NCBI GenBank assembly: GCA_030704615.1
Contig: CM060733.1
Span: 53,568,001 to 53,632,000 of the forward strand
Direction of reading: 5' to 3'
DNA length: 64,000 bases
Origin: Takakia lepidozioides
Taxonomy: Eukaryota > Plantae > Bryophyta
The notes beneath the pieces were generated by a model. The model saw nothing but the letters and a program-made list of their open reading frames with translations. It made no database searches and had not been told where the DNA came from. Made by a program: the position numbers and the translations under genes. Positions 9,875-64,000 of this stretch are shown here, one piece after another; the stretch's first letter is position 1; each line of letters begins with the position of its first letter.

Positions 9875-11237
9875 TTGCACTCATAAGACGTTGTTTGCCG
9901 TAGCCTTGTGGCCATTGACCCCGCGCCCAGTTTGAGCGGGAACAAAAGAGACAGAACCTACCTCTGTCAGGGGCTGACGTTGGTAGTAAGACTTTACTCC
10001 ATATAAAGAATTAATCCGGGTTTTCCAGATGTCCTCTAGAAATCCCTTCACACAAGCATCAATCTGCTGTGTGTGATTTGCCCAAAAACTAGGCTTCAGG
10101 AGGGCCTGGGCTTTTGGCTCAGCCTCGAGACTTTCAAAGTTGGTAAACAGGGTATAGGCACACTTCCCTTAATAGATTTGAAGAGAGCATCTCTTTGGTG
10201 AGAGAACCCCGGACAGTGTATCAGAAAATGAATACTGTCTTCAGATTGCCCACACAACGGGCAATTGCACTCTCCCTTTCCTCTCTGCTTCTGTTTGCTG
10301 TTCAAAGGTAGGCTTCCTGCCCTGAGTTTAAATTTCAGTCTAGTGCCGAGAGTGGGTAGACCCTTGAGGTCATCCAAGATGTCCTCCCCCATGTCACAGA
10401 CTGGAAACAAGTTCAGGGAAGTTTTCTGCCTAATTTCATTTTCATCAGACAATCTCATGGCAACAGACATGGCTGAGGACACTACAGCCTCTAAGTCAGA
10501 TTTATCCAGCAGGGTCAAGGCTTGCGGATCCAGGTCCGGGTCCTTGAGGATCTCTTCTACTCTCTTCTGCCAGGACTTAGCCTGTTTGACAGGGCGGTCA
10601 TGTTTCCAAGATATAGAGTCGATTAACTTAGGATATCTGGTGTTGGGCATATGTTGCAGCTGACCCCACCATCTGACCTTGAATTCATCTCGTCGGGAGC
10701 TTAAGGACGGAATGCCAAACTCACCCCGAACAGCCACATTGGCTGTTTTGGAGCATGCTGACATACACTCCTTAAGCACCCCCACTTGAATGGATTCTAG
10801 AGACTTAGCCTGGTTGGAGTTATCAACCCATATGGCAGATCCGTACTCCAAGGCAGGTCTAATAACGCGACAAAGCATGGTTTTCTTAACCTCAGAGTTG
10901 ACCCCTCTGAAGTGGAAAAATTTAGTGAGCCCCAGAGCTTTGCCCTTGGCAGTTTGAACAACTTTCCGGATATGTGCATCCCAATTACAATTGGAGGAGA
11001 ACTCAACGCCCAGGTAAGTGTAGGAAGGGAGGACTGGGATCTCTTGGCTACCCCACTGCCACTTAAGATCACTTCCTCCCTCTCCTCTGTCGTTGAATGC
11101 TACCACTGCACATTTGCTGACATTAGCCTCTAGCCCCCAAAGATCAAAGTATCTCTTCGCGCAATCAATCAACTCCTGGAGATTGGTTGGAGTCTCCCCT
11201 ATGCCTGCGAAGTCATCCGCAAACATAAGGGCTGGTA
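9875..11237 (-). mobile_element. 5'-truncated non-LTR retrotransposon (RT C-terminal half plus CCHC zinc finger), non-L1-like, 17-bp TSD
   Basis: ORF 10096-11262 has FADD, WGLEANVSKC, YTYLGV, RPALEYGSAIW and CPLCGQSEDSIHFLIHCP. TSD tgaggagggaggataga at 9858-9874 and 11238-11254. No poly(A) tail. Confidence 0.92.
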
Positions 11238-56731: not shown

Positions 56732-58820
56732 TTAAGCCAGTACAGGAGTGCAACAGCTCTTAAGAATGTCATCTATGTCAGCATGGTCTCCGGTGGCTTC
56801 ATCCTTCCGAGCATACAACAGTGTTGTCCCCTCGAACACATACACTCCTCCCTGCCACACACTTGAAAGTTAATGTCTCCAAACGAAAACCGCAAAACAT
56901 GGCTAAGGCGTTCAGGCCCCAGGGAGGATGATGAGGATAAATGTTTCCACTTGCAAGTAAACAGGCATGAGAAATGAAATGAAATGAAATGGTACTTTTT
57001 TCGTGAGAGAAAGAGATAAAGAAAGGGCTCCGATAACATTCACAGGAGGGGGAGGGAGGTGAAAGAGAGAGATATGTGAGTGGCGAAAAAGTGTTTGACA
57101 ATCACTATATTCACAAAGATTAAGGCAAACCAGCAAATGGAAATGGAAACATATTAGTTAGCAATGACCTGCTGGAGGGTGGCGGCAGGGTTGTCAGGCA
57201 TAACCTCAAGGTTATACCCTTTCACTGCTTTGGCGACGGCATCCATCCTACCAAATATTTTGACCTGCAATGGAAACGTAATTTGTAAGCTCTCTAGGCA
57301 TTTCTTCACTTGATGGACATGTTTCTCTAATTCAAGCTCTGTGCTGTGAAGTCTTTTTCCAATTTCCCCAAGGGCAAGGCAATATGAGTCTTGAAGAAGG
57401 CCCTTTCACACATTATTCTCATGAAGACCACAACAGTAAGATTCAAAGGAAACGGAAAACCACTCGGTGATATGATTATTTCCATGTGGAAAATCAGTTT
57501 CCATACACTTTGCAAAACTTACACTAGCTGGATTCAGAAAGGTGCGGCCCACTCCATAGTAAAGCCCCAATGCATCATACGCCTGCCATTCCATTTCAAT
57601 ACAAATTAGAAAACTAGAACTTTCAACAGTCGCTGCTTCTCAATTCCCAATGAGCCATGAACCTGCAGTAGAGGAAGGTGAAGAACAGGAAGGCCTGCTG
57701 GCCACTGCAGAGGAAGAGACCAAGCCGTCAGCCACTGGAGAATGTCCCAATAAGTACATCTGTGCAGTTTCACATTGCCAGTGAAAAAATAGCAGAGGAC
57801 CTGTCAGGTCATGCAGCACCATGCCACATAGAATGTAGTGGAACTTGTGACCCAGGTACCAATCCTGTGAAACGTGAGATATCGCAAACGGCAACATACC
57901 TTGCGGTCAGGATCAGCATAGAGGCACTCACTTGGAAACGGCAACTGCCACCACCAGCAAGAATGTTAACACCCAATGTCAAAACATCATCAAACCAGGA
58001 ATTCAGCAAAGCACCATCTACATTCACATGACACAAGAATGAGGGAGAATGCTTAGGTTGTGGGTTTCAGAGCTGACCATCCCAAAATCACAGAAGTATC
58101 CCCAAGCGATGTTCATCAGAGTGTAAGATGAAGAAAGGTCCGGAAAACCGCACCTTTTCTGCAAGTACGCGAGCTTTCTCTGGGGGCCCAACGCCGATGG
58201 TGATGAGCTTGAACCCTGCGGCATCAAACTTCGGCTTTGCGTCTCGTAAGGCTGCTGCGAACTCCCAGCTGCCACACTATCCTTTGTAAGTTCTTGCATT
58301 CCTTGCAATTAATCCTAACTGCAATATTGACCCCACAACTCAATCACACGAGAACAATGTCACCATCCCTTGACGAGTTTTTATGCAAAAGTCCAAATTT
58401 TAGTCTCCACACTAGCTAGTTGGCATCCGCTAGTGAAAGGCGCCTAAGATTGTCACAGAATTGTCGAGGGGAACAGGCGCTCTCTCTCTCCCTCGTTGCG
58501 GAGCATTTCGCTTCAGCACTACACTGCCATACATGTGTGAGAGATTCGATCCCAAAGAAAGCTAAACAGTAGCTCACCAGAAAGGACACCCAAAATGCCT
58601 TAAGAATGCCACCACTGCCTTCCCCTGCACCAACATCACTCCGCCAATTCAGACCAGTTTATCAGACTATTCCAGACTTTCCGCAGTGCTTCTATTGCCC
58701 GCCTAACTTCGCATCATTTGTCTGCAACATATGAGGATCCACACTCAGTTCTCAATGACATTCCGAGAAGAAAGGAATCGGTGCACACAGCGAGAGAGAG
58801 CGAGAGAGAGAGAGAGAGAG

Positions 58821-58857
<37 letters not shown>

Positions 58858-59271
58858 CAGAAATCTTATCATACACAAAAACGAGTAGATAGACTGACAA
58901 ACAGTCTGAGTTCCAACTTCCAGCATAAATTCCAAAAACAGAGGTTTGAGATTGAGGATGCAACATACATCCTCTTGGACCCACAAATCCTTGAATTGCA
59001 CAGATTCGCCCTCTGCCGTGAAGATAGAAATGGGAGCAAGGGCCGTGATATCAACGGCTCCCACTGCCGCCCGTGCAACACCTGGTCTCTGAATCAACCT
59101 TGTCCTTGATTTACCTTGTCGAGATGAGAGTGAAAGAACACGGCGTATGGAGAAAGAAGGCGACAGAGCGAACTGCACAGGCGGACAGAGACGAGGTGTG
59201 ATTCGCGGGGAGGATGCTTTCGCAGCTGCGATCTCCGTTCCAGTACCAGTTCTTAGCATTACGCCCTCCAT
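56732..59271 (-). CDS. Thioredoxin-like AhpC/TSA-domain protein (AAED1/PRXL2-like), probably plastid-targeted, multi-exon
   Basis: Transit-peptide-like N-terminus, then IFTAEGESVQFKDLW|GKAVVAFLRHFGCPF|WEFAAAL...LITIGVGPPEKA|LPFPSECLYADPDRK|AYDALGLYYGVGRTF|...LQQ|GGVYVFEGTTLLYARKDEATGDHA...*. Confidence 0.9.
58793..58852. repeat. Compound (GA)n(GT)n microsatellite in intron 1 of the AAED1-like gene
   Basis: Seen directly in the sequence. Confidence 0.95.
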
Positions 59272-60436
59272 ATTCTTCTATCGATGTGGCCTTAAACCTC
59301 CACCCCCTCTCTATATGAATGCTTGCGTCCCTCCCCCTGTCTCTCTGTCTTTATCCTCAGCTGCTTCTCTTCCCACAAATCCTCACACAGCCCCAAAACT
59401 AAATCCTTTGCAGAGATGCGAGTATGTTCAGGATGGTAGGTAGACTCAATTGACATTGAAACTCGTGTTTCTCTCTCCGCATGCATTGTACACTTGGCAA
59501 CGGCGGGAGGCTCGTGAAGAGACCGGCCGACTACTACGTGTTTGAATTTTAGCCTTAAAATCAGACCCTTTGATCTGATCTTTAAGCAAACTCTCTCCAT
59601 ATTTCGAAAGCACACTGGCTGGCTACAGGTTAGTACAGGATCGTGTGTTTACTTGAGAAAGAGTGCAACCCAAAGTGAACCCGCCCTTTGTGAGCGCATT
59701 CATGAAGGAATGCAATTGGCAGGCGGTCAACCCGCAGAGAGCCATCATGGAAAGCTCCCAGCTGTTCAGTACTGTAGTTGGGTCATTACACTGAAGTTGA
59801 GGACGATGGACCTGACTTGGCCGGTCAAACAGACTGACTGTGGTGCTTTTACTTACGATTTCATCGTCGGCATATCCGAGTCCGGATCAAAGCAACTGTG
59901 GGTCCTTGTTTACCAGAAAGAATTGAAAAGAACCCAAGAGAAATTCAGATGTGAAAGGAACCTTCAGCGAGAACTAGAAAATATCCCGAACCTGTTCAGT
60001 GTGGGTCGCCGCTTTGCAAAATCCGCAGTATATTCCAGCTGCACTGTCGGCCAAAGTAAGACTTGCCACCAATAAATAGTTTGTTCTAGAGCTTCAGATT
60101 TGTGCCATGAAATCTGGGCTTCTATTTCCCTCTTAGAAGATTGTCTCTTGAAAGCTGCTCTCTCTCTCTCTCTCTCTCAACTCCATGATACAAATTCTAC
60201 GTGATCTCAGTCTCTTCTGTCAACATCTGGTTGCTTGATCTGGTCTTCGATTGAGCAGTCACTGCAGTTCACTCTTTCACGTATATCTTCTCTTTGCCTC
60301 GTCCGTAAGCCCAATGCAATTGTAAATGCTCAGTTCTTCTTTCGCTTTCTCCACTCGAGCTTCTGGTAGAATTTGAATCTGTTCTCCTCTTCGGTTCCGA
60401 CGTCTAAAGGCGGCATTGGTGAAACATCCTGGACAA

Positions 60437-60928
60437 ATGGATCGAGTGTCAGCAGTCATAGTTGGCATAGCCGTGTGCATCTTCGCAGGGATGGCATGCG
60501 CCCAGCAGCCGCCAGCACAGGCTGGGGTGTACCCAGACCCAAACTTGACCCCAGGAAATGTTCAGGAAACTGACTACACAGTTTTCTGTGTGCGAGGCTG
60601 GCCATCATCCCACCGAAATGTGTCACAGGCCGAAAAGGATGATGTCTACAGCAATTATGGGCTGCCCGGTGGTGATTACACTGGATATTGCTCCAACGGC
60701 TGCGAAATGGATCACCTCATTCCACTGGAGCTTGGCGGGGCCAACGACGAAACCAACCTGTGGCCTCAGTTGTACACAGGAGATTGGAATGCACATACCA
60801 AAGATGCACTGGAGAATCAGATGAAAAAATTGGTCTGTTGCCAGGCTTTGGACGCTAGCGTTGCCACCACCGCTATTTCTACCGACTGGATTAAGGCTTA
60901 CAACACCTACATGAGCCAGAGCTGTTAG
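60437..60928 (+). CDS. Intronless secreted HNH-like (His-Me finger) protein of bacterial type, 163 aa
   Basis: Open ORF from ATG 60437. Hydrophobic signal peptide (VSAVIVGIAVCIFAGMACA), then YPDPNLTPG...EMDHLIPLELGGANDETNLWPQ...NAHTKDALEN...LVC...AISTDWIKAY. Confidence 0.8.
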   Translation: MDRVSAVIVGIAVCIFAGMACAQQPPAQAGVYPDPNLTPGNVQETDYTVFCVRGWPSSHRNVSQAEKDDVYSNYGLPGGDYTGYCSNGCEMDHLIPLELGGANDETNLWPQLYTGDWNAHTKDALENQMKKLVCCQALDASVATTAISTDWIKAYNTYMSQSC

Positions 60929-61593
60929 ATCAACGCCTGTCTCATGCACTAGTCAGAACTCACCGAAAAACCACAAAATCCCAAAATACAACTGTTATCC
61001 AAGACTCTTCCGTGAAGGTCTCAAAGACTCGGGCATCTAACTCGCAGAGATCTTTGCATACTGTGGAATTGTAGGAAACACAATATTCTTTGTGGCTGAT
61101 CAAATCATACTGCTGCAAATTGTTTCTGGATGGAGATGCAAATAAGGTTGCTGACGAGAGCATACCTGTAGGGCTCTGGTAGACTGTAGTATGAGAACAT
61201 GCACACAATGACATTGTTTAGGACTCTCAAATAAGGTGAATCTTGTCGTACTAGAGCTTGAGTTGCTCTTCAGTTTTGCTGCTTTTGTGAGCTGCTGTAA
61301 TGCCACTGGGATAGCTGAAGTTCTCTTCCCAATAAAACATTCTCAATCTTCAACAATGTCAGGGACGCGCAGATCCTCATTCTTTGCTTTATTGCCAAGT
61401 CGGGTATCTTCCAATTCAACAAAATGAAGGTAGACAATTGACGAGACACATTATCCAATTACAAGGAGCATCCAACAGTGATCCCAAAGTTCAGGAATGA
61501 GGTGAAAAAGAGGGAAAAAGAAGAGAATACTGAACTTCACACAAAAACCCACTGGTAAGTACTGAACAATGCCAAATGCCTGAATGTGGGATA

Positions 61594-64000
61594 CTATGTA
61601 GATGCTGTGGGCCGTTTAGAGAGCTTCGTGTGCTCAGGTCTATGTAGGGACTCATAGTCAAGGTGCACATAAGCTCGTTCCACCTCGGATAAATCCTCTA
61701 GCTTATTTTGCAAGGTTTCCCCTATGTTGTGTGCCTCCCGCAGTGACATCTCTTCGGGTAGCTCTATATCCACCTGATTCACCTCATCCAAGCCCAGATG
61801 TCACTTGCCAACCCAAGGTCAAGTGCAAAATAATCCTTTACACTTGAGCTGTGACCTGACTACAACACGTGAAATTAATGGAGTGGCAGACGACATGTGT
61901 ATAAATGAGCATGCTCAAACATCTCAAAGGGAAGAAAGAGAGGGATAAAGATAGAGAGAATATACTCATTCATATTTCCCTGCAACTGTTGAGATATTAG
62001 TCCCCTACCATGAAGAGCTTCATCCTAAAGCCAGTTGTAGGGTTCCAATCCACCAGGATAGATGCCCAAATTGCAGCAGCTGACAACAATTCCGTTACAG
62101 TGAGTGAGTGAGTGTTGTTTTAGGGGCAGGCATTGTGGTACTAGGACCGTGTAATGCAGAGTACAAGTTCAAACTTCATTTTGAAAGGTAAGTGAGACCG
62201 ATAATTAGGACATCTCCAAGGTAGAAGAGAAGGTCTTCACAAGAAGATCATTACAACTGCAGCCTTGTATCTTAGACAGTTAACTTTAGAGTACAAGTCA
62301 AATCAACCATTTCTTGAATAACAGTTACTAGATGGTGCTAAGATTCCCACCGACTGGTCATTGCTAGTGCTTAAGACTATTGGTGGGTTCCAAAAACTGT
62401 GCCAACATATTGAGTTTCTTCCATCATTCCGGAAAGGCAATGGGAAGCCTCACGCCAGAATCTGAGTGGCACTAGGAGAAGAGAAACAGATAGGGGACCT
62501 AACTAAACCAAAGTGGTCATACTTAAAAGTGTCAGTCTGTTTTTCCCTCCTGTCGCTCTAGCTTGGAGGTTTGGCACTCTGATGGGAAAGAGCACAAGAA
62601 AGAGCGAAAGAAAGGACAGAGGGAGGAGCTCTCAACATCAGTGAAAGCTCAAAGGGTTTATGAAACAGTAATCCATAACAAACAAAAGGTCTGCAAACGA
62701 ATCGTTGGACGGAGGTAAAGGGTCGTGTGAAGGTAACTTGATTAGTATTTTTGAGCCTCAAACTAAATGCCTCCTATGCCAGTGGTCAATGTTAGTAAAT
62801 GCGAGGTGGTAGTCTTCAGTGATAGGGGGGAGGGAGGGGGGATCTCAAATGGACATAGGGCAGTGAAGAGATCCATGTGCTCCCTTCCTACACATATCGT
62901 GGTCGAGTTCTCCTAGGATGCCCATGTACAAAAAGTGGTTCAAACAGTTAAATGCAAAGCGTTAGGTCTCACTCAATTTTCCACTGCAGAGGGAATACTG
63001 AAGTTGAAAAGACCATGCTTTGCAATGTTATTAGGCTACCTTGGAGTATGCATTTGCCATGTGGGAGGGCAACTCCAACCATGCTAAAACTTTAGAAGCC
63101 CACCCTAAACCTTCCCAATGCCCTCAGAAAGATGGAGATAAAGTGGCAGGCAAGTAATTGGGCATTCTATCATCGTGGAGGACCAAGAATGTCTCCCGAT
63201 AGAACTGCAGCTTTGTTGTAAGATTGACTGATTCCAGGTCCGCCTAACATGAAGTTCCATCAGCTCCTGCCTCATGAGTTTGTTGCAGCTGTGTTTGGAA
63301 GAAATTTTCAAACCTTCCATATCCAGAATGTCCACGTGCATGGACATAGTAGAAGACCAAGCAAAGACAATATGAGCCACAGGGAGAAACACAACTTAAT
63401 AACGTCCTTAGAAAATAAACCTCCACACTCAAACAGTTTCCATTCGGAGCAGTAAGTTAAAGTCACACACCTCCACAAAGTAAAGACTTCCAAATGTGTA
63501 GGCGCGCACGGTATCGAGGCGTCGGATCTCATGGTGGTGGTTAAGTGCCATGTATGTGACTTTCTGTATGAACTCAGGGGGTGCTGCTTGCCCAATCAAG
63601 GATGCTGCATCCACAATTAAATAACGCTCTTCAAGACCCCCATGCTATAAGCAAGAATTGAGGGACAAATCGGTAAGACTAATGACATTTTACAGGTGAC
63701 TGGGAAGAAACGGAAGGTCTTTTGCATCTGCTAGACACAGTTTATCATGAAACTGACGACAATCACCTAAGTCAGAAGAAGCCTTTGGAAACTGATGAGA
63801 GCAGGGCTATGCGTGTTTTCCAATCAAAGAAATCAACAATTAGAACGAAATTTCAACAAAAGGATGATCATCACCAATGGCAACATGAGTCTTGGTCGAG
63901 ATAACTAGTCCAATTTTTAATATGGAGGCGTTTAGAAGGATACCAGCATTTTCCAGCACAGTTTTGGACCATTGAAAGATGGTATAGATGGCAATGAGGA
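61594..64000 (-). CDS. Metal tolerance protein (Mn-CDF, MTP8-11 group), last exons; the gene continues beyond the window
   Basis: [18 protein letters not shown] | [44 protein letters not shown] | [48 protein letters not shown]...*. Confidence 0.93.

Follow-up and report, generated by a model that had tools for sequence, protein, structure and literature searches.

A probable ancient bacterium- or phage-derived gene for a secreted nuclease-like protein in the moss Takakia lepidozioides

Introduction

How has a short, uninterrupted gene that resembles exported bacterial proteins come to lie between two spliced plant genes in the moss Takakia lepidozioides, and what might its product do? The window analysed here is a stretch of 64,000 nucleotides of contig CM060733.1 (assembly GCA_030704615.1), in which all positions given below are counted; it is situated more than 53 Mb along a chromosome, as would suit a genome of few, large chromosomes. 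The first-pass annotation, made from the letters alone, had described an intact gene of bacterial type for a secreted HNH-like protein and had proposed it as a candidate for horizontal transfer.

Transfer of bacterial genes into bryophytes is already well documented, and the Takakia gene adds one case. According to the main text of a study from 2025 (PMC12513842), 1,809 families acquired by horizontal gene transfer are found in 49 streptophytes, with 90 events assigned to the ancestral embryophyte; bacterium-derived bryophyte genes were also treated by Ma et al. 2022, as cited in the same text. That main text mentions no HNH or nuclease family, and no paper on the Takakia gene or on its bacterial family was found by our literature search. 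Like the other bacterium-derived genes of bryophytes, the gene considered here is short, intronless, of prokaryotic ancestry, expressed and kept in early-diverging land plants.

Results

A transcribed gene of the plant nuclear genome

The coding sequence opens with an ATG at 60437, in a context with A at -3 and G at +4, and ends with a TAG at 60926-60928, specifying a product of 163 amino acids. It is transcribed without splicing. Two transcriptome-like runs from different studies, X5 and X6, which are RNA because the exon of the neighbouring MTP gene is spliced in both, each gave one contig colinear with the genome, from 60187 to 61354 in X5 and from 60187 to 61361 in X6. The transcript measures about 1.2 kb, the RNA contigs reach some 25 nt into a CT repeat, and an AATAAA signal is located 18-25 nt ahead of the contig ends. 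No joint interrupts the 163 codons and stop in these contigs, so the intact, intronless frame of the first-pass annotation was recovered, together with the (CT)n tract that it had seen upstream, a (CT)10.5 repeat. The features of the locus are collected in Table 1. A chance reading frame is excluded by a match of E = 4e-68 to protein P0001 of the clubmoss Diphasiastrum complanatum and by 5,540 homologous cluster representatives. The GC content of the coding sequence is 52% and its GC3 58%, the neighbouring exons giving 51% and 50%; the base composition matches that of the host.

Table 1. Positions of the gene, its transcript, its encoded elements and its neighbours in the window
Feature	Position	Strand	Basis
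Upstream AAED1-like gene, multi-exon, divergent	56735..59682	-	first coding exon ends at ATG 59271; RNA contig 5' end at 59682
(CT)10.5 tract, at or just within the transcript 5' end	60158..60178		Tandem Repeats Finder
5' UTR, unspliced, at least 250 nt, start probably near 60162	60187..60436	+	X5 and X6 contigs colinear with genome from 60187
Coding sequence, 163 codons plus TAG, intron-free	60437..60928	+	ORF translation; RNA contigs without joint
Predicted signal peptide, residues 1-22, cleavage ACA/QQ	60437..60502	+	inspection of sequence
Predicted His-Me-finger (beta-beta-alpha-metal) core, residues 89-126	60701..60814	+	AF2 model and conservation
D92-H93	60710-60715	+	within His-Me-finger core
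N107	60755-60757	+	within His-Me-finger core
Segment bounded by plant-specific C135 (60839-60841) and C163 (60923-60925)	60839..60925	+	homologue alignment
3' UTR, about 430 nt, AATAAA at 61331-61336	60929..61361	+	RNA contig ends at 61354 (X5) and 61361 (X6)
Last exon and 3' UTR of convergent MTP/CDF transporter gene	61353..61791	-	AATAAA on minus strand at 61388-61393

The product contains YPDPNLTPG, DHLIPLELGG (residues 92-101), NLWPQ (residues 107-111), KDALEN, LVCC and AISTDWIKAY; all the motifs quoted in the earlier reading are present. Its N-terminus, read by eye, bears out the signal peptide that had also been proposed and has the look of a eukaryote-type one, with MDR followed by a hydrophobic core of 17 residues and by the junction ACA/QQ; a hydrophobic N-terminus ending in a site of AxA type is seen in the plant copies generally. 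The A/QQ junction is likewise found in the Diphasiastrum proteins P0001 and P0026, and the AF2 model renders the region as a lone helix of low confidence (residues 4-22). The mature protein would be free-standing, with 141 residues.

The gene is part of the plant nuclear genome, situated between spliced plant genes. DNA contigs of run X1, covering 59000-60255 and 60230-62000, join it to both neighbours, which had been named from the sequence as AAED1-like and MTP genes. The flanking genes were searched exon by exon. One of the AAED1-like exons between 56735 and 59271 matches PF13911 AhpC-TSA_2 (E 5e-4), a match below the cut-off because the exon is short, and the last MTP exon, at 61597-61791 on the minus strand, matches the ZT_dimer domain of CDF/MTP transporters (E 5e-5). 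In the RNA contigs a loose MTP end at 61775 runs on into the upstream MTP exon, demonstrating splicing. A histidine-phosphatase gene is located further upstream.

These contigs bear directly on the suggestion that bacterial contamination or a chimeric assembly join accounts for the gene, an outcome that the first-pass annotation had itself named as contrary to its reading. An intronless, bacterial-like gene slightly richer in GC than the DNA around it is what such an artefact would look like. Nevertheless, the suggestion is contradicted by the DNA contigs that bridge to both plant neighbours, by two RNA data sets with untranslated regions of 250 nt and 430 nt, by the poly(A) signal and the eukaryote-type signal peptide, and by orthologues on two Diphasiastrum chromosomes, so that its probability is negligible.

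A large family of bacterial and phage relatives

The first word search returned Diphasiastrum proteins with 65-66% identity, followed by bacterial and metagenomic proteins at 32-42%. An exhaustive search collected 5,540 cluster representatives at E<=1e-3, of which 2,507 remain at E<=1e-10; identity does not exceed 54% in any of them. A profile built from the four plant proteins and run against 5.8 billion proteins gave 2,932 matches at E<=1e-20, in which the score fell from 315-328 bits for Diphasiastrum, through a two-domain metagenomic protein, to 172 bits. Single-domain members reached E values of 1e-35 to 1e-45, with homology over the full length. Furthermore, one narrow peptide pattern retrieved at least 591 relatives, at most 47-48% identical, from the GTDB species genomes, among them Armatimonadota, Gemmatimonadales, Acidobacteriota, Chloroflexota, Actinomycetota, methanotrophs, Deinococcus and a cyanobacterial plasmid. 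A single-protein scan of JGI metagenomes yielded one match, at 46%, and no other plant or alga, while among 241 million metagenome records the plant-only peptides Q[AD]GVYPDP and PGGD[YH]TGY retrieved no relative.

There is no Pfam model for this family, which belongs to bacteria of soil, peat and freshwater and to their phages. The nearest representatives are embedded in dense bacterial gene neighbourhoods, one of them beside the nuo operon and nadABC. Bacterial members carry Sec or lipoprotein (lipobox) signals, as judged by eye, and some are fused to an extracellular Excalibur domain. The family is also present, with signal peptides, on 294 IMG/VR viral contigs from phages or prophages (L088-L167), and is therefore mobile among bacteria. 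The same mature protein is encoded by viral contig L088 and by Methylobacterium terricola (P0250).

Every tree unites the four plant rows in a single clade. Support for it amounts to 98 (SH-like) with 349 rows, 98 (SH-aLRT) with 90 rows and 91/91 (UFBoot/SH-aLRT) in a careful tree of 56 rows, the bootstrap of which was not fully settled. In these unrooted trees the clade is one twig among bacterial and phage rows, in a family that spans many bacterial phyla. In the careful tree it joins two long branches, P0040 and P0056, at 99/97, of which P0040 comes from a bacterial-looking metagenome contig. The position of the plant clade inside the bacterial and phage family bears out the bacterial origin claimed in the first-pass annotation. 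The gene is also integrated, intact and expressed, and bacterial ancestry followed by domestication is very likely.

A different history would be that of an ancient gene of eukaryotes or of the green lineage that was passed down vertically and disappeared from nearly all descendants. A few relatives of eukaryote-like appearance (P0042, P0032, P0034 and P0044) could be seen as remnants of it, but they do not group with the plant clade, which is itself a small twig in a family of many bacterial phyla and phages. In addition, the best 120 of the 2,932 profile matches from the 5.8 billion proteins name no further plant or alga, a statement that applies to the annotated proteins of that collection; as Takakia's own protein is not among them, unannotated bryophytes, ferns or algae may likewise carry the gene. 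Widespread green homologues with a vertical tree, which the first-pass annotation had regarded as decisive against transfer, were not encountered in the databases searched. Vertical descent is consequently very improbable, and bacterial ancestry is retained. Since the eukaryote-looking members fall outside the plant clade, other eukaryotes may have acquired the family independently. P0042 is a marine-protist MMETSP transcript, and P0032, P0034 and P0044 are JGI metagenome proteins; among the members of such appearance, one carries the domain twice in tandem (340 aa) and several have eukaryote-like signal peptides.

P0056 is one of the two closest relatives outside the plants. The contig that carries it (L087:1-3406; GCA_040384165.1, JAWVHB010057956.1) is 3.4 kb long, with 22-27% GC, and encodes five intronless reading frames on the same strand, 25-100 bp apart, one of them with DUF7666. 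Neither the atlas, the cluster names nor a word search with a neighbour revealed its source, which may be an AT-rich bacterium, a giant virus or a protist. A giant virus as the donor of the plant gene was considered and not adopted, since it would be founded on a single long branch and on the composition of a single contig. Given the AT-rich and densely packed nature of this contig, a viral or symbiont intermediary may have been involved.

Orthologues in a clubmoss and the age of the transfer

Diphasiastrum complanatum has four loci, one on chromosome 22, two on chromosome 18 and the fourth on an unplaced scaffold, the two chromosomes measuring 45-49 Mb. Their coding cores are also intronless. 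In the models of 208/209 aa an upstream exon replaces the signal peptide that is seen in the model of 180 aa (P0026), and an uninterrupted reading frame of 180 aa with a signal peptide is present at 10555-11094 (L086:10001-11097, chromosome 18, CM055109.1); the longer models may represent mis-annotation or an alternative 5' exon.

The junction A/QQ..Q.GVYPDP is common to all plant copies. Moreover, C135 and C163 are present in all four plant proteins, whereas a cysteine occupies the column of C135 in 1 of the 456 other homologues and that of C163 in 2 of the 456. Such shared derived residues support a single origin of the plant copies. Comparison of the plant copies gave a dN of 0.27-0.31, a dS of at least 1.3 or too high to compute, and an omega of about 0.14-0.21; for the Takakia copy and that on Diphasiastrum chromosome 22, dS could not be computed on account of saturation. 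Saturated synonymous sites combined with low omega indicate purifying selection over a very long time. As the Diphasiastrum orthologues fall into the same clade and dS is saturated, the transfer is ancient and did not take place recently in Takakia. The proposal of horizontal transfer was thus upheld, but the gene is not private to Takakia and has orthologues in Diphasiastrum.

A single transfer before mosses and lycophytes separated is the favoured account, held with moderate confidence, and the gene was then probably lost in most plants. The moss and clubmoss copies might instead be of bacterial origin without descending from a common plant ancestor, either by plant-to-plant transfer or by capture from near-identical donors. 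The gene is seen in two distant plant lineages only, and no synteny is shared between the Takakia window and either Diphasiastrum locus; the linkage to AAED1 and MTP, which the first-pass annotation had proposed to look for in relatives, is real in Takakia and is not found at the Diphasiastrum loci, an absence of shared synteny that is as expected at such depth. Furthermore, the two paralogue groups of Diphasiastrum differ from one another as much as from the Takakia copy (~64-66%), and the branching order of the three plant lineages differs between trees. Against separate origins stand the single plant clade (support 91-98) and, with respect to two bacterial captures, the common processed N-terminus and a cysteine pair that is nearly absent from the 456 others, while saturated dS excludes a recent plant-to-plant transfer and still allows an old one. 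Separate acquisition is accordingly unlikely, though it deserves more weight than vertical descent, and one early transfer is the reading carried forward here.

Predicted fold, catalytic core and cysteines

The AF2 model, built with 22 sequences, has a pLDDT of 87 overall and above 92 in the core. It predicts strands at residues 89-93 and 108-112 and a helix at 119-134, with D92-H93 at the end of the first strand and N118, K122, D123 and E126 assigned to the core helix. In an alignment of 456 homologues, all 16 invariant or near-invariant positions of the family (G40, C51, R60, E90, D92, H93, G100, G101, N107-W109, K122, D123, E126, C134 and W151) are kept in the plant proteins. N107 is found in 456 of 456 homologues; of the helix residues that are candidates for a metal ligand, N118 is found in 363, H120 in 323 and D123 in 452.

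The mature protein has six cysteines (C51, C85, C89, C134, C135 and C163), spaced as for disulfides, and lacks the zinc-binding CxxC pairs of classical HNH domains. From their distribution we infer the pairs C51-C134, family-wide, C85-C89, of the subfamily, and C135-C163, restricted to plants.

Known families are approached from a distance. PF01844 HNH scores 16.4 bits (cut-off 21.4) and PF13930 Endonuclea_NS_2 17 bits (cut-off 27), both below threshold; NCBIfam has no match to the protein, and matches in PHROGs are sub-threshold or uninformative. A profile of the family gave a single match in the PDB, the HNH core of Cas8f-HNH (E 6e-4), whereas Foldseek against the PDB returned nothing at E<=0.001, its E values being 1 or higher. 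VIA-align gave Z<=4.9, with Cas8-HNH at 4.9, Rhs2-CT at 4.4 and GVE2 HNH at 4.3, scores that lie in the range of chance; the weak matches are mostly His-Me nucleases, namely these three with Sda1, McrA, EsaD, NucA and Serratia nuclease. Between predicted models, whole-domain TM scores of 0.70-0.76 over 122-139 residues were obtained to bacterial and phage Atlas clusters, one of them being 68% fused to Excalibur, an extracellular domain. The atlas feature search led to unnamed, phage-rich clusters only.

These weak likenesses leave room for the proposal that the exported protein is not a nuclease and that its His-Me scaffold binds nucleic acid or another polymer. Family models below threshold, weak structural matches and the lack of a characterised member of the exact family in the literature searched would all suit such a role. 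On the other hand, about 456 homologues and the plant copies alike keep D92, H93, N107, K122, D123 and E126 unchanged, as expected of a catalytic site, and an enzyme would also fit with the joining of relatives to Excalibur, which is a domain found in extracellular nucleases. A binding protein is therefore rather improbable, and a secreted nuclease is the reading that we prefer, with moderate assurance, from the retained catalytic residues, the predicted fold and the signal peptide read by eye.

Discussion

Proposed origin and function

Taken as a whole, the gene is best regarded, with the same moderate degree of confidence, as an ancient gene of bacterial or phage derivation for an exported His-Me-finger protein that would now serve the plant as a secreted nuclease. 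One transfer, probably before bryophytes and vascular plants parted, would have brought into a plant genome a gene from a bacterium or phage that encoded a small exported His-Me-finger (HNH-like) protein; long purifying selection and loss in most lineages would have followed. The signal peptide would direct the product into the ER, where up to three disulfides may form before secretion. Outside the cell it would act as a metal-dependent nuclease, with H93 as the putative general base and with D92 and one helix residue (N118, H120 or D123) as ligands of the metal. A need for disulfides would render the protein harmless inside the cell, in the manner of Vvn/EndoI and Serratia nuclease. The likely role would be to degrade nucleic acid outside the cell, either as a defence against microbes or to supply phosphate.

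A bolder version, which we consider doubtful in its full extent, is that the first land plants captured an exported His-Me nuclease from bacteria or phages, which the relict Takakia and the Lycopodiaceae now use as an apoplastic, disulfide-activated DNase or RNase, directed at microbes or biofilms or serving to scavenge phosphate. If true, an apoplastic nuclease activated by disulfides would constitute a class of secreted plant nuclease, and a component of defence, not described so far.

The locus is a clean case of a bacterial gene fixed in early land plants, being integrated, expressed, under purifying selection and with its catalytic residues kept. Its occurrence in the earliest-branching moss and in a clubmoss, and in no model plant, points to an ancient acquisition that survives only in relict lineages and bears on the dating of transfers. 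The search also brings to attention a family of bacteria and phages, very large and made up of exported nuclease-like proteins, for which Pfam offers no model.

Comparison with known exported nucleases

The closest counterparts are the bacterial and phage proteins labelled "HNH endonuclease" by NCBI, such as those of Methylobacterium terricola (P0250) and of a Ktedonobacteraceae MAG (P0189), which align over their full length at 40-54% identity. The two groups are alike in the invariant residues, the N-terminal export signal and the predicted fold, whereas the plant copies alone have the eukaryote-type signal peptide, eukaryotic UTRs, a poly(A) signal, the pair C135/C163 and the QQ..GVYPDP N-terminus.

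A more distant likeness is predicted to exported, non-specific nucleases of beta-beta-alpha-metal type, namely Vvn/EndoI (Endonuclease_1) and Serratia nuclease, EndA, Sda1 and NucA (Endonuclease_NS). The exported His-Me nucleases Vvn/EndoI and Serratia nuclease are disulfide-dependent and show no activity in the reducing cytoplasm (PMC5714182). Z values of 2.9-4.1 were obtained for Sda1, NucA and Serratia nuclease, which belong to the weak structural matches. In contrast to this likeness, no sequence relation to the Vvn and Serratia types is detectable outside the core, and their DRGH or EndoI motifs differ from the DH...N...NLWPQ of the Takakia protein.

Colicin E9, pyocins S2 and AP41, Rhs2-CT and EsaD, which have a core of HNH type and act outside the producer, are among the best of the weak structural matches. 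Such HNH toxins are the C-terminal domains of large delivered toxins that are accompanied by immunity proteins, whereas the Takakia protein is free-standing, and no adjacent immunity gene was seen in the plants or in the bacterial loci inspected.

The known secreted nucleases of plants include the S1/P1-type ENDO/BFN1 enzymes, RNase T2 and the staphylococcal-like CAN nucleases. The location proposed for the Takakia protein, in the secretory pathway and apoplast, and its proposed substrate, extracellular or senescence-related nucleic acid, are the same as theirs, but the folds and the chemistry are unrelated. To our knowledge, no plant nuclease of HNH or His-Me type with a signal peptide has been characterised; the product would then be the first secreted nuclease of HNH type known from plants, and it is small and easy to express and assay.

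Minor features of the locus

The first-pass annotation had reported no remnants of transposable elements. This holds within the window, where the intergenic DNA, apart from the simple repeat, has no further copy, but about 75 nt of the 5' UTR (60226-60300) occur in multiple copies in the DNA run. On either side of this segment additional contigs diverge, and word depth there is about 70 compared with 20-30 nearby, with no second copy within the window. Two adjacent microsatellites, (GA)16 and (GT)17, are located at 58792-58857 in the first intron of the AAED1-like gene.

At the other end, the convergent nuclease-like and MTP transcripts terminate no more than about 10 nt apart, at 61354/61361 and at 61353/61366, respectively, each after an AATAAA of its own on opposite strands. 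The coding sequence showed no variant among three samples. In the UTRs, G>T at 60281 is present in both RNA runs and in one X1 DNA contig (depth 22.7 of 52.3 at that point), and C>G at 61247 is present in run X6 and in X7, a "plant metagenome" run that contains a little Takakia DNA.
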